Virus record (IMG/VR): IMGVR_UViG_3300027759_000045
Coordinates: 1-64,000 of that record
Reading direction: 5' to 3' (one strand)
Length of the DNA stretch: 64,000 nt
Each line of letters begins with the position of its first letter. The first letter of the stretch is position 1. Shown here in pieces: positions 42,859-63,360 of this stretch. Under the pieces are notes generated by a model, which was not told the origin of the DNA, did not search any database, and saw only the letters and a list, made by a program, of their open reading frames with translations. A program made the position numbers and the translations under genes.

Positions 42859-43332
42859 ATGTCGCAACTTGCATGGATGTTTAGTTTAATTCCAGATTTT
42901 ATTTTTGTACTCATTGCCTGGGCCGCTGCTGTAGGCGGGGTTGGACTATTTTTAGCCAGCAAAGCAGTGCGTTGGATTCCCGGTATTGCACTGTACCGAA
43001 CACCTGCTGAGTTAGCAGGCGTTGTGTTGTTGGTCATTGGTGCCTGGATGCTGGGCGGGCAAGCTGCCGATGCACGTTGGCAAGCAAAAGTTGTAGAAGT
43101 TGAAGCAAAGTTAAAAATTGCCGAAGAACAATCTGTTGTTGCCAACACAGAAATAGAAACCAAAACCCGAGAAACAATCAAATACATTCGTGGTCGCACA
43201 GAGATTGTTAAACAATATGTTGACCGCGAAGTGGTCAAGTACGACACCAAGTTCATGCCAGGCGGCATTTGTGAAATACCTCGAGAATTTGTCAAGGCAC
43301 ACAATGATGCCGCAGAAGGACCTAAAAAATGA
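42859..43332 (+). CDS. Putative inner-membrane spanin (Rz-like)
   Basis: N-terminal TM helices, coiled coil, C-terminal Cys; lysis context. Confidence 0.6.
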   Translation: MSQLAWMFSLIPDFIFVLIAWAAAVGGVGLFLASKAVRWIPGIALYRTPAELAGVVLLVIGAWMLGGQAADARWQAKVVEVEAKLKIAEEQSVVANTEIETKTRETIKYIRGRTEIVKQYVDREVVKYDTKFMPGGICEIPREFVKAHNDAAEGPKK

Positions 43333-43901
43333 GAGCTAATGAATTTGTAACTGAAGAACCCAGAACAGCGGCCCCAAAGCCCGAAATAGTATCAGTACAG
43401 GACGATGGCAAAACGATCACAATTAAAGTACGCGGCCATGACGGGGCTGTGCGAGCAATTGCAAATTCGAACCCAGCGGTGTTACAACAACAGTTGAATC
43501 TCAAATACGGGCTAAGACTGCCACACAGCATTGCTAAAAAGTTTGCAGGAATGCCAGCTGCAATGGCCGAAGATCAAGCAGACAATCCCGACAGTTGGCA
43601 GTCACAGGCAGCAGATGCCGAACGTGATGAAGAAACTGCTAAGATGGCTGCGCAAGATGCTGAGGCAGGTGGATTGGCAGAAGAACAACTAGACGAAAAA
43701 AGTACTAGCCAAGCACAGTTCCGCACAATGGCAGCAGCCGCACACAATCCCAAGTTTGCCAAGAAAGTTGGCATCAGCCCGGATGTGGCTCGAGAATTCC
43801 ACGGTGCTGATCGTAAACAAAATTATAAATCATTGCCCCGGAAAGCCGCAGAAGACGCATCCTGGGGAATGGCACCCGAAAGTCGAGGCTACAAGAAATG
43901 A
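43329..43901 (+). CDS. Putative virion internal protein
   Basis: MRANEFVTE leader; QAQFRTMAAAAHNPKFAKKVGI module. Confidence 0.55.
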   Translation: MRANEFVTEEPRTAAPKPEIVSVQDDGKTITIKVRGHDGAVRAIANSNPAVLQQQLNLKYGLRLPHSIAKKFAGMPAAMAEDQADNPDSWQSQAADAERDEETAKMAAQDAEAGGLAEEQLDEKSTSQAQFRTMAAAAHNPKFAKKVGISPDVAREFHGADRKQNYKSLPRKAAEDASWGMAPESRGYKK

Positions 43902-48731: not shown

Positions 48732-51020
48732 ATGCAAAATAATCCTGAAATTGAAAAAATTGTCAACAATGCTGTGGCCATTGCAAAAGCTCACAATCAT
48801 GCTTATGTGATAACCGAACATGTACTGATGGCAATGATTCAACACGCACCATTTCGAGCATTGTTGGTGAAATATGGCACAGCCGTTGAACAGTTCGAAG
48901 GCGAACTAAGTGCATATATTCTAGCGCAGGTTAGTTTAATAACCAGCAAAGAAGATGTTACACCTCGCAAAACCAATGGCCTTGAGCGCATGTTTAATCG
49001 TGCGCTGACACAGGTACTGTTTACCGGACGCAGATCAATCACATTGCTGGATCTGTACCTGGCCATGATGGCAGAAAATAACAGCCATGCACATTACTTT
49101 TTGTTGAAGTATGGCGTTCACAAAACTGAATTTGCTGAGTTCTATCAGAAAAATCATGCCTCTGCCTCTAAAGAGTTGAGCAATGAAACTGCAAACGAAA
49201 TCCTGGATCAACACTGTACAAATCTAAGCAAACGAGCTGCCGACGGACAATTAGAACCCATGATCGGCCGGGCCGCAGAACTGGAAGAAATGATCACTGT
49301 GTTGGCTCGCAAGTTCAAGGCCAACGTGCTGATGGTGGGCGATCCTGGTGTGGGCAAAACTGCCATCATTGACGGACTAGCACAGGAGATCAACGCTGGC
49401 CGTGTTCCAGAGTTTCTTAAAGGTTCTGAAGTTTGGGGATTAGAGATTGGTTCGCTGTTGGCTGGCAGCAAATACCGTGGTGAGTTTGAAGAAAAGTTCA
49501 AAGACGTTATCTCTGCACTGGAAACTAAAAAGAACTGTGTGCTGTTTATCGACGAAGCGCACACCATGATGGGCGCAGGAACTTCGGGATCAAGCAGTTT
49601 AGACTTTGCCAACATGATCAAACCAGCAATTACCAAGGGCAACATCAAGGTAATTGCGAGTACCACATGGGAAGAATACTACGAGAGCTTTGAAAAAGAT
49701 CGTGCGCTGATGCGCAGATTCCACAGAGTCAATATTGGTGAGCCTGATTCAGCCACCACAGAGCAAATTCTAATTGGCATTAGCCCGCGTCTAGAAACAT
49801 TCCACAATGTACTGATTGACACAGAAGCAATGACAGCGGCTGTGGAATTGAGTGGACGCTACATTCATGATCGTAAGAATCCTGACAAGTCAATCGACCT
49901 GTTGGATGGCGCCTGTGCTGGAGAGCGTGTGAAAGACCTGGGCACAGTTACCATCAACCGTGACATGATCATGGCGCAACTCAGTCGTGTTACCGGAGTT
50001 CCTTTAGATAGATTGCAAAACGAACGCAGTACCAAGGTTACCGAGCTGGAAGGTAACATCAAGCAGTTCTTATACGGGCAAGACCAAGCCATTGACACTG
50101 TGCTAGAACGTATCTACATCAACTTCTCCGGCATTGGCAATGCTAAAAAGCCTGTGGCCAGTTTCTTGTTCCTGGGTCCAACCGGCACAGGTAAAACAGA
50201 ACTGGCCAAACTGCTGTCGCAAAATCTAGACATGCACCTGTTGAAATATGACATGAGTGAGTTCCAAGAGAAGCACAGCATTGCCAGTTTGATTGGTGCC
50301 CCTCCTGGATACGTGGGCTTTGATGACGGCAACGTGGGCGGCGGCAAGTTGATCAGCGACATTTCCAAGCACCCGTTCAGTATCCTGTTGTTTGACGAAA
50401 TTGAAAAGGCACACCCAGATGTGGTCAACATCATGTTGCAGATGCTGGATGAAGCCCGGATCACTGGCAGCAGTGGCAAGTCAGTGGATGTCAAGAACTG
50501 TATCATTATTATGACCAGTAACCTAGGTGCCAGAGACAATGAAAACAACAACATCGGCTTTGGTCAGTCGTTAGAAAAGACCGGCGAAGAAGACCGTGCT
50601 ATGAAAGAGTTCTTCAAGCCGGAACTGCGCAATCGCATTGACAAGGTGTGCAAATTCAACAAGTTAGACAAGCTAGCCATCAAGAAGATTGTGGTCAAGT
50701 TCACAGCAGAGTTACAAGAAACACTGTTGAACAAGAACATTCGTCTTACATTTGCTGAAGATGTGATCGACATGCTGGCAGACAAAGGCTACGATCCCAA
50801 GATGGGTGCTCGTCCATTGGGTCGCAAGATTGACGAACTGATCCGTGTACCACTTAGTAAGCGTATCTTGTTTGATCAAATTGCTGACTGTGCAATTCAT
50901 GCCAGTATGGTCAATGATACAGTGGAATTCACAACCACATCATTGCTGACTGTGCCTGGCCCAGGCGTCAACGACGAAGGATACATTGTAATTGATCAAT
51001 TTACACCCAACATTCAATAA
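48732..51020 (+). CDS. clpA: ClpA-like ATP-dependent chaperone
   Basis: Two AAA+ modules (GDPGVGKT, GPTGTGKT), KYRGEFEE, IGF loop, no ClpB middle domain. Confidence 0.88.
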   Translation: MQNNPEIEKIVNNAVAIAKAHNHAYVITEHVLMAMIQHAPFRALLVKYGTAVEQFEGELSAYILAQVSLITSKEDVTPRKTNGLERMFNRALTQVLFTGRRSITLLDLYLAMMAENNSHAHYFLLKYGVHKTEFAEFYQKNHASASKELSNETANEILDQHCTNLSKRAADGQLEPMIGRAAELEEMITVLARKFKANVLMVGDPGVGKTAIIDGLAQEINAGRVPEFLKGSEVWGLEIGSLLAGSKYRGEFEEKFKDVISALETKKNCVLFIDEAHTMMGAGTSGSSSLDFANMIKPAITKGNIKVIASTTWEEYYESFEKDRALMRRFHRVNIGEPDSATTEQILIGISPRLETFHNVLIDTEAMTAAVELSGRYIHDRKNPDKSIDLLDGACAGERVKDLGTVTINRDMIMAQLSRVTGVPLDRLQNERSTKVTELEGNIKQFLYGQDQAIDTVLERIYINFSGIGNAKKPVASFLFLGPTGTGKTELAKLLSQNLDMHLLKYDMSEFQEKHSIASLIGAPPGYVGFDDGNVGGGKLISDISKHPFSILLFDEIEKAHPDVVNIMLQMLDEARITGSSGKSVDVKNCIIIMTSNLGARDNENNNIGFGQSLEKTGEEDRAMKEFFKPELRNRIDKVCKFNKLDKLAIKKIVVKFTAELQETLLNKNIRLTFAEDVIDMLADKGYDPKMGARPLGRKIDELIRVPLSKRILFDQIADCAIHASMVNDTVEFTTTSLLTVPGPGVNDEGYIVIDQFTPNIQ

Positions 51021-55290: not shown

Positions 55291-55317
55291 AAAAGCCACT
55301 TTGCCCAGTGGCTTTTT
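55291..55317 (+). terminator. Rho-independent terminator
   Basis: aaaagccact-ttgccc-agtggcttttt. Confidence 0.85.
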
Positions 55318-55340
55318 CATTTGCGCTAAATATTACAATC

Positions 55341-58300
55341 ATGAATATTTCTGAACTAGATTCCTACAACCTTGCTGATGCTGTTAAATTTAATGAACAG
55401 TTGAACCCACGTATCTGGCAGGGCAATAAAATGCGCCCACAGGTGCGGGCCACGCTGTTAAAAATTGCTGAAGACTTTAAACAAAGTTTGGGGATTGGCG
55501 ATTTGAACGTCAAAGACATCACCTTGTCCGGCAGCAATGCTGGTTACACATATACTCCACATAGTGACATAGATCTACACCTGGTGGTGGACCTACCCGA
55601 AGCAGATGTGAGTGAAGTGTATCGCGAGTTGTTTGATGCTAAAAAGTTTCAGTACAACGAAACACACAATATCAAAATTGGTGGCTACGATGTAGAACTC
55701 TATGTGGAAAACGCCAACAAATCGGCAGTGAGTCAAGGCATATTCAGTGTGCTGAATAACGACTGGATCAACATTCCACTGAAAAAACGTTCTACAATAA
55801 ACGACACTGCGGTCAAGAGCAAGTACGATGTGATCAAGCATCGCATTGAATCAGCAGTGAAATCTGGCAGTCTAAAACGACTGACCAACACTGCTGCCAA
55901 GATTAAAAAGATGCGTCAAGCCGGACTTGATCAGCACGGTGAACTGGGTCCAGAAAACATTGCGTACAAGATGTTGCGTTCACAAGGTGTTATACAACAA
56001 CTGTATGATGCCAGAACCAAGGCCAAAGATCGAGCACTGAGTCTTAAAGAACGGTCTATTGAAATTGATAAACCATTTAAATTCACCTACGGATTCAAAG
56101 CCACAGAAGATGTTGGTGCTTCATGGGATGGAGTAAGTCCCACAACACAGATGTTCTTGAATGAAGAACCCAAGTCAGATGAAGATATACTCACAGACTT
56201 TGTGGAGTTTTGTGTTGCAGAACTAGAGATTGAACAGATGCCACGTGTTCGCCTGCGTAAAGATCCGCAGTGGCCTGTGCGGCACAAGACGTTTGGTCGC
56301 TACAACGACAATGAAAAAATGTTAGAAGTGGCCTGGGGTCAACGACACATCATGGATGTGTTGCGCACAGTGGCACATGAACTCACACACAAGCATCAAC
56401 ACGAACGTGATGGCAGTGATATGGGATCTGACGCAGGTGAAACTGGCAGTCCTTACGAAAACGAAGCCAATGCTCGTGCCGGTGTACTCATGCGTGACTA
56501 TGCCAAACTGCACCCGGAACATTTTGCCGCCGGCCAAACAGATGATTTAGCAGAAGCATCAGGATACATCCCCACAAAGAAGCAGGCAAAGGACCCACGC
56601 TTTAGCATGGCCTTGACTCGAGATGTACGTCCAGGTGCGGTGGGTAAGGAAGCAAACAAACTAGGACTAAAGACTGACAATCAAGGACATCCAGGATTGT
56701 TAATGACTGGTTTGGCCAATGCACTGCGTGAGTTTAAAGAAACTGGGCAGATGCCGCTGATATACGAAGATGAGTTGTTTGAAATCAACATGAGCACAGG
56801 TAGCTTACGTCGCGAAGCTGCCAAGACCGGCGCTATTGCTGGCATGGAATTTGAAATGATTGTGCCCAATGTGGAAGGTGGCGACGATGATGGCCAACAG
56901 GAACCTGATTATGAGTATGACGAAGGTGTTAGTAGTATCCAAGACGCATATGACTTCTTCTACGACGGTGATTACAACAGCCGAGGTGATGTTACTCGAC
57001 TGCGTGAGAAGATGCAAAATGAATATTACGAATGGCTAGGTGAGTCGTTTGATACTCGTTGGGACGGTGACGAGTCAGAGTTTGTGTACAACTACCTTAA
57101 AGAAAACGCCAGTGCAGATGAAATTGCAGAAATACTAAGCACAGAACCCGACGCAGACGGTGAATACCCAGAGCCTGATAAACAGGCATATCGCGATGCC
57201 ACAGAAAAAGTTGTCGAAGAAAGCTACGGCAACTACTGGTATGATGCAGCACGTGAAAGTGCGCAGGAAGATTTTAATCAGAATGCAGACCTAGAATCAG
57301 AATGGTTAGAAGATCGAGACTTGAACCGCATGTCAGACATTGAAAATGAATACAACATGAGTTGGCCGCACTGGCAGTCAATGGGCAATGGTGGCGAAGC
57401 CAGCATCGAAGATGTTGCCCAAGAGTTTGAAAATGCCATAGACCGTCCTGTTCAAGCCAGCGGTAACTATCACTCCGGCGGCGTGCGAAGACCCAGCCCA
57501 ACAGCACAGCACTATCTAGTAGAACCTGATGGCAGTTTAGAAGCCAATGACAGCGATGATGTAGGCCTAGAGTTTGTAAGTCCACCTTTGCCTATTGACG
57601 ATATATTAAGTGACTTGAACAAAGTCAAGGCCTGGGCCAAACAATACGGATGCTACACCAACGATTCAACAGGCCTACACATCAACATCTCAGTGCCGGA
57701 CTACAGTAGAGAAAACTTGGACTTTGTTAAACTAGCTCTGTTAATGGGCGACGAGTATGTGCTGGACAACTTTGGTCGTGCTGGCAATACCTACGCTAAA
57801 TCAGCAATGAAATTAGTACGCGATCAAGTGCGCACTAAACCCGACGAAGCTGAACGTTTGTTGGATAAAATGAAAGGCAACCTGGACAGTTTGGCAAGCA
57901 AGGCCATACACTCGGGCGTGACCAGCAAGTACACCAGTATCAACACCAAGGACGGACATATTGAATTCCGCTCACCCGGTGGTGACTGGTTAGATGACAA
58001 CTTTGACAAGATTGAAAACACATTATTGCGTTTTACAGTGGCCATGAGTGCGGCTCTAAATCCAGAAATGTATCGCGAAGAATACCTGAAGAAACTGTAC
58101 AAGTTGTTGACACAGGACAACAAGGGTTCTGACACCATCAAGTACTTCAGTGAATATGTAGCAGGCAAGATTCCTGCAGCCGCACTGCGTAGTTTTGTTA
58201 AGCAGGCACAGTTGGAACGCAAGTTGAAGAAAGATCCAACAGGCGGTGAAAAATATTGGTGGAGTGTTCGTAGTCCTGGCAATAGCAATGCTGGTATAGA

Positions 58301-59072
58301 AGTTGTTGCCTCATCTAAAGAAGAAGCAATTGAAAAAGCCATTGGTGGTTATCCAAGTTGGGCTAACTATCGAAGTTCGTTGGTTGCCAAGCCAATGCGT
58401 CCATATGAACAATCTGCAAAAACTGTTCGCTACGAAATCTACAACAAACAGACTGGCAACTCAGTAGAGGATGCCGATGGAATTACCAATGATGAAGAGG
58501 CATTGGTTCGTCTCAATGATTATATTGAACACGGTCCGCATAGCCTACAACGAGGCCAGGCCACTGCTATGTTTGGTATACGTACTACCGGTGGAGTTGG
58601 AATTGTTGATATAGACATGCCAATAGCCCAGGGTCGTGCTGCCACAAGCCCAACTGGACAGTGGAAAATGATTGACGGATTAAATCGTGAATTATATCGT
58701 TTCCGTCCTGCAGAAAACACAAGAACAAGAGCCAATTACTTGGCAAGAGTATGGGCAGAAACACATAACTTTGACGGTAACTATCAAGTTGATCCAGTGG
58801 AAGAAAACGATGTGGTGCCGCAACCGGACGTGATCCCGCTACAGCAACCAACACCCGTTCCAGGCAGTACCGCAGACCTAGCACAACGCCGAGCACAAGG
58901 TGGCGAGTTTACCGGTGCTTGGAAGATTGTAGATTCTGATGGTAATGAACTGCATAGATTTTCCGGCATAGGCAATCAACAGCGTGACGCTAATCGTGTG
59001 GCCACACAGTGGTTGACCGACAATGGCTACAGCTATGGCACAGATGTCACTGTGCTACCAATAGTGAGTTAA
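55341..59072 (+). CDS. Polyvalent protein: Pol-beta-type nucleotidyltransferase + zincin metallopeptidase + amidoligase (COOH-NH2 ligase) + C-terminal repeats
   Basis: GSNA..SDIDLH; AHELTH..Q..ENEANA; GMEFE, DGSL, LEFVSP, TGLHINIS, KY.SIN, IEFR. Confidence 0.75.
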   Translation: MNISELDSYNLADAVKFNEQLNPRIWQGNKMRPQVRATLLKIAEDFKQSLGIGDLNVKDITLSGSNAGYTYTPHSDIDLHLVVDLPEADVSEVYRELFDAKKFQYNETHNIKIGGYDVELYVENANKSAVSQGIFSVLNNDWINIPLKKRSTINDTAVKSKYDVIKHRIESAVKSGSLKRLTNTAAKIKKMRQAGLDQHGELGPENIAYKMLRSQGVIQQLYDARTKAKDRALSLKERSIEIDKPFKFTYGFKATEDVGASWDGVSPTTQMFLNEEPKSDEDILTDFVEFCVAELEIEQMPRVRLRKDPQWPVRHKTFGRYNDNEKMLEVAWGQRHIMDVLRTVAHELTHKHQHERDGSDMGSDAGETGSPYENEANARAGVLMRDYAKLHPEHFAAGQTDDLAEASGYIPTKKQAKDPRFSMALTRDVRPGAVGKEANKLGLKTDNQGHPGLLMTGLANALREFKETGQMPLIYEDELFEINMSTGSLRREAAKTGAIAGMEFEMIVPNVEGGDDDGQQEPDYEYDEGVSSIQDAYDFFYDGDYNSRGDVTRLREKMQNEYYEWLGESFDTRWDGDESEFVYNYLKENASADEIAEILSTEPDADGEYPEPDKQAYRDATEKVVEESYGNYWYDAARESAQEDFNQNADLESEWLEDRDLNRMSDIENEYNMSWPHWQSMGNGGEASIEDVAQEFENAIDRPVQASGNYHSGGVRRPSPTAQHYLVEPDGSLEANDSDDVGLEFVSPPLPIDDILSDLNKVKAWAKQYGCYTNDSTGLHINISVPDYSRENLDFVKLALLMGDEYVLDNFGRAGNTYAKSAMKLVRDQVRTKPDEAERLLDKMKGNLDSLASKAIHSGVTSKYTSINTKDGHIEFRSPGGDWLDDNFDKIENTLLRFTVAMSAALNPEMYREEYLKKLYKLLTQDNKGSDTIKYFSEYVAGKIPAAALRSFVKQAQLERKLKKDPTGGEKYWWSVRSPGNSNAGIEVVASSKEEAIEKAIGGYPSWANYRSSLVAKPMRPYEQSAKTVRYEIYNKQTGNSVEDADGITNDEEALVRLNDYIEHGPHSLQRGQATAMFGIRTTGGVGIVDIDMPIAQGRAATSPTGQWKMIDGLNRELYRFRPAENTRTRANYLARVWAETHNFDGNYQVDPVEENDVVPQPDVIPLQQPTPVPGSTADLAQRRAQGGEFTGAWKIVDSDGNELHRFSGIGNQQRDANRVATQWLTDNGYSYGTDVTVLPIVS

Positions 59073-59073
59073 C

Positions 59074-60060
59074 ATGCGAGCCAGTGAATTTTTAATCGAA
59101 TATAGAGATAGACTATTACAATATGTCAAGAGTCTGTTGCCCACTTGGCCTGAATATGTTCTCAAAGATTGGTTGGTGCCCAACAAAGGTGACTTTAGTA
59201 ATTTACCAGATACTGAACTTAAAAATGGTATAATGGAAAAATTAAAAGGACAAGGTCTTTCTCCGAGTACTAAATGGCAACTTGTACCCGATATGAAGTT
59301 TACAATGGACATGTTTGAGCCAATGACTACACAGCGATTGGTTGGTCGTGCAGGTGGCAAAAGTGATTTAGGCATGAAAATTCCAAAGGATGCCGAACGA
59401 CACGCTACACAAGCCGCCCTGGCACAACAGCAAGGCGGTGTGCGTAAAGAACCTGTGCTACTAATAAAAACAGCCAATGGATATGAACTATTAGAAGGTT
59501 GGCATAGAACAATACAGCACTTTGCTCGGTATCCTAATGGATATACAGGCCCTGCGTATGTGGCAGTGGCACAAGGTCAGCAAGGTGTGGCGGAAGGCTC
59601 GGAACATTACAATGGCATTGAAATCTCCATGGAAAAGGAAGATGATGAAATTATGGTAAAGGCAATAATGCCAGGCGGTCGCGAACTTGGACATGTATTA
59701 TTTGTACAAGAGGGTGATTACTTAATGCCACAAGATTTAGAAGTTGATGAACGCTATCAAGGCCAAGGCATTGCCGCCACAATGTACGACTATATAAAAA
59801 GCAAAGGATACAAGATACGCCGCAGTGGTCAACAAACAGATGCAGGTGCAGGCTTCTGGGACAAACATCGTCCTGAGCAAAACGTTTGGGAAAACTTTGC
59901 GGATGGCAAAAATCCTGGACGCAAAGGCTTGAGCAAGCGAGTGGGAATTCCTAAAAAAGCCACCTTGGGCAAACTGGAAAAGATTGCAAAGTCCAGCACA
60001 GGCGAACGCCGCAGGATGGCACAGTGGCAACTAAATATGAGACGAGGTAAGAAAAAATGA
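59074..60060 (+). CDS. Multi-module protein: ParB-like + GNAT acetyltransferase + basic tail
   Basis: EPVLL..LLEGWHR; V...YQGQGIA..MY, QT.AG..FW. Confidence 0.65.
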   Translation: MRASEFLIEYRDRLLQYVKSLLPTWPEYVLKDWLVPNKGDFSNLPDTELKNGIMEKLKGQGLSPSTKWQLVPDMKFTMDMFEPMTTQRLVGRAGGKSDLGMKIPKDAERHATQAALAQQQGGVRKEPVLLIKTANGYELLEGWHRTIQHFARYPNGYTGPAYVAVAQGQQGVAEGSEHYNGIEISMEKEDDEIMVKAIMPGGRELGHVLFVQEGDYLMPQDLEVDERYQGQGIAATMYDYIKSKGYKIRRSGQQTDAGAGFWDKHRPEQNVWENFADGKNPGRKGLSKRVGIPKKATLGKLEKIAKSSTGERRRMAQWQLNMRRGKKK

Positions 60061-60381
60061 GATCAAGTGAATTCGTATTTGAAAAGTGGAGCGAAAAATA
60101 CAAAAGCAGTATTAACTGTAGCCACCCTCGAGGCTTTTCACAAAAAGCACACTGTGCCGGTAAAAACAAACAGAATGAATCAGTTGAGATGGAAATGGTG
60201 TGCGAAGATTGTGGCATGTGTGAAACACATGGCAATGTAAATGAAATTAAAAAAGGTGCTAAAGACTCAAATGGCTATACCCGTTGCTGGCCTGGCAAAC
60301 ATGCTGAAGGCACCAAAAAGGGCAAGAATGGCGGACAAGTTCGCAACTGTGTGCCCAATGAATCGCAAGGTGTGGCGGAAG
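59580..60381 (+). repeat. 17-bp direct repeat GCAAGGTGTGGCGGAAG (59580-59596 and 60365-60381)
   Basis: Identical copies, both encoding QGVAE at module junctions. Confidence 0.8.
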
Positions 60382-60794
60382 AATTATCAAAAGAGTTTGA
60401 TCTTATTGAAAGTATCATCGAAGGTATTGCTGAGCACAATGGTGTAGATGCCGAAACAGTATGGGAGGACCTAGAAAGCCTGACTGAAGATGAACTGTAT
60501 GCGTTTGCTGTGACTTCGCAACTGAACGAAGACTGGCAAAAGGCCAACAAGCGAGACAAGACCGATGGCATGAGCCAAAAGGCTGTGAATGCTTATCGCA
60601 GAGAGAATCCCGGATCGAAACTAAAGACTGCTGTGACCACTAAACCTTCGAAGCTAAAGAAAGGCTCTAAAGCCTCCAAGCGCAGATCAAGCTATTGCTC
60701 ACGCAGCCGTGGACAAATGAAAATGCATAGTATCTCATGTGCCAAAACTCCAGACAAAGCCATCTGCAAAGCACGACGTCGTTGGAACTGCTGA
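60057..60794 (+). CDS. Putative virion internal multi-module protein
   Basis: MRSSEFVFE leader; SINCSHPRGFSQKAHC, CWPG..NCVP, YRRENPGSKL..SYC.RS modules. Confidence 0.6.
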   Translation: MRSSEFVFEKWSEKYKSSINCSHPRGFSQKAHCAGKNKQNESVEMEMVCEDCGMCETHGNVNEIKKGAKDSNGYTRCWPGKHAEGTKKGKNGGQVRNCVPNESQGVAEELSKEFDLIESIIEGIAEHNGVDAETVWEDLESLTEDELYAFAVTSQLNEDWQKANKRDKTDGMSQKAVNAYRRENPGSKLKTAVTTKPSKLKKGSKASKRRSSYCSRSRGQMKMHSISCAKTPDKAICKARRRWNC

Positions 60795-60982
60795 TGAAGG
60801 TCAAAGAAGTCGTTAAAAGTGCAAAGCAATGGACTGCCAAGGTGCGTGTTCAGAATCCTGGATATGTGGGCTGGGTCGATGCAGTGGTCTGGGCTCCTAA
60901 CACTCATGTGGCCAGACAAATGATCAAAGCACAGTACCGAATTGAAGATTGGCACGTGGGCTCAATCAAAGAACTGCGTTAA
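60794..60982 (+). CDS. Hypothetical protein
   Basis: TGATG coupling; MKVKEVV. Confidence 0.55.
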   Translation: MKVKEVVKSAKQWTAKVRVQNPGYVGWVDAVVWAPNTHVARQMIKAQYRIEDWHVGSIKELR

Positions 60983-61683
60983 CTACGTAAGCGAGCCAGT
61001 CCTACTAGTCTAAATACACCAAGCCACATCCATCCTGCATCAAATTCAAACCAACGACGACTCAGTCTAGGGTTAGCAGGATCCAGATGATGGTTATTAT
61101 GCAGGCATTCCCCACCAACAACAATATCCCAAGGCACAATGTTTCTGCTGTGATCTTTAGTTTCGCCATTTCTATATCCCCACCAATGTCCAATGCCGTT
61201 GATAACTCCGGCCGCCCACCAAGGTATCCATGCCATTTGTATACCCCAAATCAGCACTCCCCACACACCAAACAACGCAACATCGATCGCAAGCATTAAT
61301 AAGATGCCTAGTCTGCTGTGGCGAGTGTAAACGTTGCGTTCAATCCAGTCATCCGGTGTGCCTGCGCCATACTGTGCAACCATCTCTGCGTCTCGGCTGG
61401 CTGAGTGATACAGGCCTGCACCTTTAAACAATACACGCCCAATTCCGTATACGTGTGGGCTGTGCGGATCACCTTCTGCATCACTGAATCTGTGATGCTT
61501 GCGATGGATAGCTACCCATTGCTTTGTAACCATGCCTGTGGTGAGCCATAGCCAGGCTCGCATGAAGTGTTCCAGTACAGGAGTAAAAACGATACCGCGA
61601 TGTGCTTGGCCACGGTGTAGGTACAATGTAACACAGATTATGGTAATGTGTGTGACTATTAAGGTATAGATAAGTTCTGTCAT
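60979..61683 (-). CDS. Membrane fatty-acid (delta-9-type) desaturase
   Basis: His boxes HRGQAH, HRKHH, HNNHH; GDPHSP. Confidence 0.9.
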   Translation of the reverse strand: MTELIYTLIVTHITIICVTLYLHRGQAHRGIVFTPVLEHFMRAWLWLTTGMVTKQWVAIHRKHHRFSDAEGDPHSPHVYGIGRVLFKGAGLYHSASRDAEMVAQYGAGTPDDWIERNVYTRHSRLGILLMLAIDVALFGVWGVLIWGIQMAWIPWWAAGVINGIGHWWGYRNGETKDHSRNIVPWDIVVGGECLHNNHHLDPANPRLSRRWFEFDAGWMWLGVFRLVGLARLRS

Positions 61684-61751
61684 AGTGTATTTAAGTAAAA
61701 CTATTGCCAAATTGCTAATTTAACTATACAGTTAACGGCACTAAATACAGC

Positions 61752-62033
61752 ATGAAACAGTTTATTCGTGTGCTATGTGACGTTGATTGTGCTTGGGCAG
61801 GTACTGAGCCAGTGTATCGCGTTTATGTTGATGACGAATTATTTGCTGAAAGAACCTGGCGCTGGCAAGATGTGTATCTAGAAGAAATGATACAGATCGA
61901 AGCAGAGCCGGGAGAATATGTAATCAGTTATGAACTTGTTGATTCTCCCGGTGCCACGCTACGTGTGTCAAACATGCGTGTGGATTATGGTCCCGGAAGA
62001 ATTAAAGGAAATCTACTAAAGATACTCACATGA
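61752..62033 (+). CDS. Hypothetical late protein
   Basis: YRVYVDDELFAERTW; TAAATA-4nt-ATG. Confidence 0.65.
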   Translation: MKQFIRVLCDVDCAWAGTEPVYRVYVDDELFAERTWRWQDVYLEEMIQIEAEPGEYVISYELVDSPGATLRVSNMRVDYGPGRIKGNLLKILT

Positions 62034-62230
62034 GAGCTCAGGAATTTATCAAAGAAAATGCGTCAGTTGGTGCCACCAGTTCCGGCAGCGTTGCCACAGT
62101 GGCCATGCCCATGGGTGGCATGCAGTCAAGAAATCCCGATAGTTTCTTTTCTGGTAAATATACAAATGACCCTTTTCCCAACACACCGAAAAGTATGAGA
62201 AAGAAAGCAAGGAAAACAAATGTTAAGTGA
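62030..62230 (+). CDS. Small putative virion protein
   Basis: MRAQEFIKE leader; GATSSGSVA. Confidence 0.55.
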   Translation: MRAQEFIKENASVGATSSGSVATVAMPMGGMQSRNPDSFFSGKYTNDPFPNTPKSMRKKARKTNVK

Positions 62231-62660
62231 TTTACTAAAGACCTATTTGGCCAGTACATTTTCGTACTATTTGAAGGCACACTATTTTCATTGGAATGTG
62301 GAAGGACCTGACTTTGGTGAATTACATGAATTCTTTTCCAACATCTACGAAGATGCCTATTCAGCTGTGGATCCCATTGCTGAGTACATCCGTACCACAG
62401 AAGAATATGCTCCTGGCAGTCTCAGCCGCTTTTTAGAACTAACACAAGTACCAGATCAAACCAAAGTGCCACGTGCTCGTTTGATGCTGGAAGAATTACT
62501 CGCAGACACCCAAATAATGATCAACCTTAGCCGCCAAGTTTTCGAAGCCAGTGCTGCCGAAGGTCGTGAAGACATTGCAAACTTTGCCGCAGAACGCCAA
62601 AGCCAACACGGCAAGTATCAGTGGCAACTGAAAAGTTACTTGAAGGACGCGAGGGCATAA
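62220..62660 (+). CDS. dps: Dps/ferritin-like protein
   Basis: KAHYFHWNVEG..F..LHEFF..IY, D.IAE.IR, H.K..WQL. Confidence 0.9.
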   Translation: MLSDLLKTYLASTFSYYLKAHYFHWNVEGPDFGELHEFFSNIYEDAYSAVDPIAEYIRTTEEYAPGSLSRFLELTQVPDQTKVPRARLMLEELLADTQIMINLSRQVFEASAAEGREDIANFAAERQSQHGKYQWQLKSYLKDARA

Positions 62661-62661
62661 C

Positions 62662-63360
62662 ATGGATGAAATTTACACGATAATGCAGAGACTTGCATTG
62701 ATTGAAAGCACTATCACACCAGATAATGTTACCAAGGGATTGAACGCACAACAAAAATCTGTGCCGCAGATGCCTGCACTGTTTAAAATGCCTGATCAAG
62801 GTCCTGTGTTGGGTGGCGATCCTGATAAGAAAGCCTCCAGTGCTGGTTACATGGTTGGCTCCAATGAAAGTGAAGAACCTGAGCAGGATGCACTGGAAGA
62901 AGAAGTGGCCAGTGAAGACAAGCTGGACCGAGTTAAAAAGTCATTTGCCGATTACCTTGACAGCATTTCCGACGAAAAGAAAGACAGTGACTTAAAAGAC
63001 CGGGTCCGAGTAGATCGTGACATCAGCAAGCGGCCTGCGAAAGATGCCAGCATCATTGCCAAACAAGTTGTAGGTGTTGCAGAAGATCCCACAGAAGAAG
63101 ATCCCATTGTACAAATGCCCACAACCCCGGTACAAGAACCTACCTATGCTGAATCAGCGCCGGTTAAAACCGTTGCACTAGAAGACGGTCGTTCATGTGA
63201 AATACACGGAGACGAACGTGCGGGATTTGAAATTCGACACGCGGGCCGTTCATTGAAGAGTCGCTTTAAGAACTTGGACCAAGCACAGATGGCACTGGAA
63301 ATGTACCAGGCTAGACAACGCCGACAAGACGAATCAGCCGACTACGTAGAGGAAGCATAA
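62662..63360 (+). CDS. Acidic putative virion protein
   Basis: 232 aa ORF, Glu-rich junction motifs. Confidence 0.55.
   Translation: MDEIYTIMQRLALIESTITPDNVTKGLNAQQKSVPQMPALFKMPDQGPVLGGDPDKKASSAGYMVGSNESEEPEQDALEEEVASEDKLDRVKKSFADYLDSISDEKKDSDLKDRVRVDRDISKRPAKDASIIAKQVVGVAEDPTEEDPIVQMPTTPVQEPTYAESAPVKTVALEDGRSCEIHGDERAGFEIRHAGRSLKSRFKNLDQAQMALEMYQARQRRQDESADYVEEA

Follow-up and report, generated by a model that had tools for sequence, protein, structure and literature searches.

A DNA-conserved in-frame linker marks module boundaries in proteins of a freshwater jumbo phage and its metagenomic relatives

The virus record IMGVR_UViG_3300027759_000045 is a genome of 346,856 bp with direct terminal repeats, estimated to be complete, whose first 64 kb (positions 1 to 64,000, hereafter the window) were analysed; its source is a freshwater jumbo phage carrying T4-type head genes. 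Towards the end of the window, two adjacent genes contain the same short DNA word in frame, which encodes the pentapeptide QGVAE. Among relatives of these genes, module boundaries in hundreds of unrelated combinations carry the word, and homology breaks at its edges. Moreover, cassettes have been added or exchanged between two copies of the word, and its synonymous sites are held far beyond codon usage and beyond neighbouring conserved codons. By analogy, the two products would be modular proteins such as T4-like phages pack into their capsid, each with a nine-residue leader similar to the T4 capsid targeting sequence (CTS), followed by modules of ~50-170 amino acids on short disordered connectors ending in hydrophobic-x-Glu. 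The best explanation, which we consider probable, is that of head-packaged polyproteins in which protease sites part the modules and recombination at the DNA-conserved linker shuffles them.

The two linker copies and the conservation of their DNA

The 17-mer GCAAGGTGTGGCGGAAG occurs exactly twice in the whole genome, at 59580-59596 and 60365-60381, both on the + strand, and a third copy at up to two mismatches was found neither in the window nor in the whole genome. The codon phase is the same in both copies: the third base of the preceding codon, then CAA GGT GTG GCG GAA, then the first base of the next codon. An earlier note on this DNA, made from its letters alone, had reported this identity in two adjacent genes, and both positions hold. 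The two genes, which overlap by ATGA, are organised as follows:

59074-60060 (+), gene of a 328-amino-acid modular protein with a CTS-like leader, ParB-like and GNAT modules and a basic tail
59074-59100 (+), leader MRASEFLIE
59101-59580 (+), ParB-like module
59580-59596 (+), linker copy 1; codons 59581-59595 encode QGVAE, residues 170-174
59596-59877 (+), GNAT module
59878-59892 (+), relic linker QNVWE
59893-60057 (+), basic tail NFADGK...
60057-60794 (+), gene of a 245-amino-acid modular protein with a CTS-like leader and Cys-rich, acidic and DUF6321 modules
60057-60083 (+), leader MRSSEFVFE
60084-60365 (+), Cys-rich module
60365-60381 (+), linker copy 2; codons 60366-60380 encode QGVAE, residues 104-108
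60381-60515 (+), acidic module
60516-60530 (+), relic linker SQLNE
60531-60791 (+), DUF6321 module

The DNA flanking one copy shows no similarity to that flanking the other. At copy 1, the protein homology of relatives ends at residues 174-180 or starts at residues 169-170 (BLAST breakpoints), DNA high-scoring segment pairs (HSPs) end at 59580-59599, and Logan unitigs of three runs end at 59598-59602. At copy 2, the protein homology begins at residues 104-105 or stops at 108-112, and DNA HSPs start at 60360-60399. The AlphaFold (AF2) model of the 328-amino-acid protein has a mean predicted local distance difference test score of 72, with values below 50 exactly at residues 169-174, which are the linker, and at 268-282. 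Regarding the ParB-like/GNAT boundary that the earlier note had drawn at copy 1, the GNAT side stands weakly, with a Pfam match below the cut-off (E = 6e-4) plus support by fold, and the ParB-like label comes solely from precomputed PF02195 matches in close homologues, the window's own module having no Pfam match. On the other hand, DUF6321 at the C-terminus of the 245-amino-acid protein is a solid Pfam assignment.

Under a uniform model, about 0.02 direct 17-mer pairs are expected within 1 kb, but about 100 exact direct repeats of at least 17 nt, mostly in repetitive fibre-like genes, are present in the genome. Taken alone, two copies within one genome are suggestive, and it is the comparative data that decide. 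In this regard, 159 IMG/VR loci were fetched by protein similarity alone, a selection blind to the linker DNA, and word-based protein searches returned thousands of metagenomic homologues whose coverage was plainly modular. Exact CAAGGTGTGGCGGAA was present at 30 of the 54 non-redundant in-frame QGVAE sites in loci chosen in this way, whereas 0.4% would be expected from codon usage (P ~6e-57 assuming independent sites, which these are not fully). Nearly all the remaining sites differ by GTG>GTA, GCG>GCA or GAA>GAG only. The linker Ala codon is GCG at 44 of the 54 sites, compared with 9% of the Ala codons in the same loci, and its Gly codon is GGT at 51 of 54, compared with a background of 39%. 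The adjacent ParB module served as an internal control: its conserved four-fold codons in the same loci use 3-4 codons each, with a homozygosity of 0.28-0.66, and the leaders of the two window genes themselves differ at synonymous sites. The check on synonymous sites that the earlier note had proposed thus came out in its favour.

The word is by no means restricted to this genome. An exact scan of IMG/VR for the 15-mer gave at least 167 occurrences in at least 165 distinct contexts, on at least 120 stretches; among the matches listed, about 158 lie in frame in long open reading frames (ORFs) with a median of 526 amino acids, and up to four copies occur in one ORF of 1570 amino acids. Over all loci examined (L005-L203), the 15-mer is in frame in ORFs of at least 100 amino acids 237 times and lies in short frames 10 times. 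Five other jumbo phages (260-525 kb) carry 3-5 copies each, and a reversed control pattern gave 0. The genome-wide count asked for in the earlier note therefore stays at two copies of the 17-mer here, but its 15-mer is widespread among relatives. The linker word is 15-21 nt of nearly invariant DNA, with the extended consensus (A/G/C)AG-CAAGGTGTGGCGGAA-GGC and the encoded connector (K/E/Q)-QGVAE-(G). When its 20-mer consensus was searched in 596 Gbp of prokaryote genomes, six matches were obtained, five of them chance-like in high-GC chromosomes and the sixth in an 8.9-kb lake contig binned as Bacteroidetes (L292), which has three canonical linkers in one frame of 510 amino acids. This contig may be either mis-binned phage DNA or a hint at the host group.

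Exchange of modules at the linker

When 208 junctions were compared with 90-nt flanks, the left flanks formed 172 DNA clusters and the right flanks 181. For 85 pairs of junctions with an identity of 80% or more on one side but unrelated DNA on the other, the exact match went only 0-5 nt past the linker. At the protein level, the comparison of 203 junctions yielded 148 pairs sharing the left module only, 60 sharing the right one only and 3 sharing both, and such a large excess of one-sided over two-sided pairs fits a high turnover. In a test for old orthologous junctions, in which both flanks would have diverged, no pair showed 50-88% ungapped DNA identity on both sides.

Individual relatives illustrate the exchanges. 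Four relatives of the 245-amino-acid protein (P0123, P0125, P0130 and P0154) have one or two extra cassettes of ~100-150 amino acids between two linkers, at the position occupied by the single linker of the window (copy 2). Another protein, P0062, reads ParB-QGVAE-acidic-DUF6321, which is the exact fusion expected from recombination between the two copies of the window. In the syntenic relative L017/L070, the DNA is 81% similar up to 59598 and again, at 88%, from 60388 on, the 790 nt between the two linkers being replaced by 2058 nt of other modules. In four freshwater runs from different studies, contigs or unitigs break at the linkers, and some of them place QGVAE directly before the DUF6321 module. 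The earlier note had proposed a DNA site for recombination or insertion that allows in-frame shuffling of modules, with indels ending at the motif; in the relatives, the junction role, the DNA conservation and the shuffling are all supported, breakpoints and cassette indels do end at the motif, and the contrary outcome that it had named, with varied codons and displaced breakpoints, did not come about. Since the same codons are kept throughout, the linker looks like a natural standard connector for in-frame domain swaps.

A total of 122 cassettes are bounded by two linkers, with a median of 101 amino acids, and a Pfam scan of ten sampled ones gave no family. Single-linkage clustering of the modules resulted in 151 clusters, a rough figure because multi-module segments merged 235 segments into one. 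Some ORFs look like empty sockets, with a stop 0-7 codons after a canonical linker; these are among L129, L167, L030, L143, L012, L122, L177 and L181. In L006, L122 and L084, a leader and a short spacer are followed by the linker at residues 18-22, an arrangement that resembles a generic leader cassette.

Besides the canonical copies, the window contains degenerate junctions, two of them in other modular genes, listed here with a small leader-bearing ORF:

43329-43901 (+), third leader-bearing protein, with leader MRANEFVTE and the relic junction GGLAE/EQLDEK at 43668-43682
55308-59072 (+), polyvalent-type protein of 1254 amino acids with NTP_transf_2 (nucleotidyltransferase), Peptidase_M78-like and Amidoligase_2 modules and the relic DDLAE/ASGYIP at 56541-56555
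62030-62230 (+), small ORF of 66 amino acids with the CTS-like leader MRAQEFIKE

The relics of the window (DDLAE, GGLAE, QNVWE and SQLNE) are located exactly where other phages have the canonical QGVAE before the same module start. Thus, EQLDEK follows a canonical linker in L126 and ASGYIP does so in L047, L120 and L132, the NFADGK... tail comes directly after QGVAE in L017, L019, L028, L051 and L139, and the DUF6321 module directly after the linker in L085, L183 and contigs of runs X2 and X3. The earlier note had also pointed to looser xxAE junctions in the frames at 43329, 55341 and 62662. Two of the three, 43329 and 55341, proved to be at true linker positions, and the third, VGVAE at 63070 in the gene at 62662, matched no known module boundary. 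At the DNA level these looser junctions do not resemble the linker, with 4-10 mismatches out of 15.

Leaders, head genes and the predicted processing

Six ORFs of the genome start with M-R-A/S-x-E-F-(LIV)-x-E, four in the window (43329, 59074, 60057 and 62030) and two at genome positions 247028 and 247396. In T4, the decapeptide leader is a capsid targeting sequence cleaved by gp21 after L/I-x-E (PMC9026906, PMC3012670), and its ten residues suffice for targeting (PMC9026906). MRASEFLIE, MRSSEFVFE, MRANEFVTE, MRAQEFIKE and the two further leaders resemble this type, of about ten residues with an L/I-x-E end; it is a resemblance only, with L, V or I at P3. T4 IPII and IPIII start with MKTYQEFIAE, and an ORF in the related locus L201 starts with MKTYQFITE, almost the T4 leader.

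Modules begin alike after a leader or after a linker. One of them is found as MRSSEFVFE/KWSEKYK in the window and as QGVAE/GWSQKYK in L010; another one as MRASEFLIE/YRDRLLQ in the window and as QGVAE/GSEQISE/YRDRLLQ in several loci. Among 449 module starts lacking a canonical linker but homologous to starts found after one, Glu precedes 280, and (L/I/V/M)-x-E precedes 207, compared with a background of 1.5% (~30-fold), many of these being leader ends. Of 88 variants that differ from the word by one mismatch, 2 have a non-synonymous change in the Glu codon and 36 have the Gln codon turned into Glu or Lys.

Profile searches located a Peptidase_S77 domain (PF03420, a prohead protease of the T4 gp21 type) at genome positions 204450-204905 (87 bits), within a protease gene at 204405-205052. 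The major capsid protein is likewise T4-type, with a Gp23 match (PF07068) at 206333-207343 (325 bits), and scaffold-like ORFs, acidic and with coiled coils, adjoin the protease gene, so that a gp21-type protease is accompanied by T4-type capsid and scaffold. The maturation site of the capsid protein presumably lies at YLKE/N, as read by eye in the translation and placed with reference to the T4 gp23 sequence. An S77 protease was also seen in three of the five other linker-bearing jumbo phages. The capsid gene is ~67% identical in DNA to its counterparts in Rak2-, 121Q- and PA5oct-like jumbo phages. A near-identity search of the region against cultured phages and a tblastn search with the 328-amino-acid protein gave no match; among cultured phages it has no close relative. 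The C-terminal module of ORF 43329, after GGLAE, is the N-terminal module of 121Q gp51, annotated as 'virion structural protein', a common module that lends modest support to a virion location.

Cleavage after the linker Glu by the S77 protease is plausible. This reading is well supported, if indirectly, because the protease is encoded, the leaders are T4-like, and modules start after leader or linker alike. A complex prediction of the protease with the linker peptide scored 0.00, which counts neither way. According to the explanation that we favour, two short identical words would recombine during co-infection or replication, joining the left side of one copy to the right side of the other, always in frame; the exchange taking place at the word, new junctions would inherit the consensus. 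Junctions that are no longer exchanged would drift to relics such as QNVWE, SQLNE, DDLAE and GGLAE, retaining only the hydrophobic-x-Glu that the protease would need. The prohead S77 protease would then cut after the Glu of the leader and of every connector, and the modules would be freed as separate internal or ejected proteins.

Alternative explanations and precedents

Recombination at short identity is the simplest account of the DNA identity, and several points weigh against it or against the packaging that goes with it. A stretch of 15-21 identical nucleotides is short for homologous recombination to be efficient. The synonymous constraint along the word is uneven: positions 3 and 6 hardly vary, with 1 synonymous change each, compared with 14, 8 and 11 at positions 9, 12 and 15 (chi-square P ~5e-4), and the base before the linker (G) is likewise held, a pattern that does not match a plain homology-length model. 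This unevenness hints that the 5' half, AGCAAGGTGT, is read by something sequence-specific, and it may therefore be recognised as such; alternatively, the AGGTG core in AGCAAGGTGT may act as a Shine-Dalgarno (SD)-like pause. Furthermore, the junctions are not statistically independent, the IMG/VR counts of the 15-mer are lower bounds, and all the relatives are metagenome assemblies. As for packaging and processing, the P3 residue of the linker is Val and not the Leu or Ile of the documented T4 motif, and the virion presence and cleavage of these proteins we infer indirectly, from sequence. Of the 106 linker-bearing ORFs, 22 (21%) match the strict leader pattern, a threefold enrichment; as a universal feature of linker proteins this pattern was rejected, though looser forms are frequent.

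A word kept as a nucleotide-level signal, be it the target of a phage nuclease or recombinase or an SD-like AGGTG pause at domain boundaries, is a doubtful alternative, under which recombination at the word would be enzyme-driven or a mere by-product. It would account for the much stronger conservation of positions 3 and 6 and of the preceding base than of positions 9, 12 and 15, the core so held contains AGGTG, and motif-targeted deletion pathways have been proposed from T4 work (discussion in PMC2839356). However, the word occurs almost solely as in-frame QGVAE (237 versus 10), which is not how an independent DNA site would behave; the SD-like core has no start codon after it, no enzyme emerged as a candidate, and there are only 0-5 copies per genome. 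An internal translation start at that core was itself rejected, with no start codon at a workable distance and variable codons downstream. It seems rather improbable that a dedicated nuclease or recombinase encoded by the phage recognises AGCAAGGTGTGGCGGAAGGC, in the manner of a 'protein-domain integron', an enzyme-driven system that would insert, delete and swap in-frame domain cassettes in polyproteins delivered by the capsid, and whose linker peptide would double as the protease site for the later separation of the domains.

Were the linker a protein feature alone, either a flexible connector or a protease site, its DNA identity would have to come from recent common descent, which is very unlikely. 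A constraint on G-V-A-E is certainly visible at the peptide level, with Glu nearly invariant, the relic junctions retain hydrophobic-x-Glu, and two orthologous junctions with common derived variants indicate some vertical inheritance. Nevertheless, a single DNA word joins ~170-180 unrelated left and right flanks, the adjacent conserved codons are synonymously scrambled and those of the linker are not, and the boundaries of homology and cassettes coincide with the word. Hardly credible is a chance repeat in this genome, or chimeric metagenome contigs elsewhere, in spite of the many exact repeats of at least 17 nt in the genome and of relatives that all come from metagenome assemblies. Numerous independent samples contain the 15-mer in frame, in hundreds of contexts, the reversed control had 0 matches, and the 20-mer is essentially absent from the 596 Gbp of prokaryote genomes bar one lake contig; besides, an identity of 15-21 nt would be below assembler k-mer size, so by itself it would not create chimeras.

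The closest precedent for an exchange at the linker is the leader DNA shared by T4 ipII and ipIII, where an exactly identical segment of 47 nt comprises the ribosome-binding site and ten leader codons between unrelated flanks (L206, T4 65416-66415). As here, the T4 internal proteins IPI, IPII and IPIII have a short leader ending in hydrophobic-x-Glu before a highly diverse cargo, together with a gp21-type S77 protease, and their loci are hypervariable (PMC3012670, PMC2839356). In the window, in contrast, the word is internal to the ORFs, measures 15-21 nt and joins serial modules in polyproteins, and the leaders are not conserved in their DNA. In phiKZ-like phages, where head and ejection proteins mature at multiple sites, a gp21-related protease likewise cleaves many head proteins behind the Glu of a three-residue motif (PMC9026906), but this motif is S/A-x-E, the phages belong to another lineage, and conservation of the site at the DNA level is unreported.

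Short conserved peptide motifs, VENN in CdiA and PxxxxDPxGL in Rhs proteins, likewise bound variable modules, with homology breaking at the motif DNA. The Rhs motif is also a self-cleavage site. The VENN-encoding sequences of cdiA are proposed recombination sites that swap modules (PMC3150448). Those proteins are, however, toxins secreted by bacteria, in which a single C-terminal module varies and which come with immunity genes and orphan arrays, whereas the phage proteins described here have several linkers each and modules mostly of unassigned function, and no immunity partner was seen. Instead of the carrier and orphan-cassette architecture of polymorphic toxins, the ORFs here have leaders of the phage head type and contain their modules one after another; the linker resembles the CdiA/Rhs motifs in function but does not belong to that system.

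Polyvalent proteins, described from phages and conjugative elements (Iyer et al. 2017, PMC5512222), include phage proteins that unite several domains of ParB-like, nucleotidyltransferase, peptidase and acetyltransferase types and for which packaging, delivery and proteolytic processing are predicted, and the products of 55308-59072 and 59074-60060 resemble them in having at least two conflict-type domains per polypeptide. A conserved junction sequence at the peptide or DNA level is absent from that survey, whose text has neither 'linker' nor 'shuffl' (PMC5512222). In T-even gp37/gp38 adhesins and PeSL cassettes, exchanges also take place in or near short conserved sequences flanking variable segments (PMC3157838, PMC2839356), and those of gp38 fall within conserved motifs (PMC3157838). 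The glycine-rich motifs of gp37/gp38 are structural parts of a single domain, whereas the QGVAE word is a coding connector between domains. PeSLs are intergenic elements made of a promoter and a stem-loop; in contrast, the word is coding, lies in frame in ORFs in 237 of 247 cases, is non-palindromic and has no promoter hexamers. Nor does it look like an integron attC site, since the 21-nt consensus lacks inverted repeats within it and each cassette encodes a protein segment in frame; no integrase search was made. No description of this linker was found in the open-access literature searched. Of the 50 literature matches to QGVAE, the ten listed all concern alpha-synuclein, which contains the pentapeptide by unrelated coincidence.

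If the explanation that we favour is true, a large group of environmental jumbo phages would recombine small domains via a standard in-frame connector of ~20 nt into ever-new capsid-delivered polyproteins, as a natural counterpart of modular cloning standards, which would explain the quick diversification of injected effector repertoires. With the 15-mer as a simple handle, hundreds of uncharacterised cargo domains, mostly lacking a family, could then be catalogued, and Botstein-type 'linker' models of modular evolution would become directly testable at the level of protein domains. From a practical point of view, the leader and the candidate processing site might serve to load foreign proteins into large phage heads.

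Some minor observations concern the modules and their surroundings. DUF6321 and Cys-rich modules also occur in pelagiphages and T4-like cyanophages, for example L204 (Synechococcus phage S-CREM2) and L205 (DSL-LC02). In the cyanophages they are hosted by large hypothetical proteins encoded between the small and large terminase genes, and the proteins of both cyanophages and pelagiphages carry neither QGVAE linkers nor a leader. Outside the window, an ORF for an HNH-type endonuclease directly follows the capsid gene (genome positions 207426-208235), and an ORF of 789 amino acids upstream of the portal (199076-201445) contains long Ala/Gly-rich tandem DNA repeats, exact over up to 86 nt. Within the window, the modular genes are interspersed with auxiliary-type genes:

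48732-51020 (+), Clp-type ATPase of 762 amino acids
53460-54314 (+), metallophosphoesterase
60979-61710 (-), fatty-acid desaturase, on the opposite strand
62220-62660 (+), ferritin-like protein

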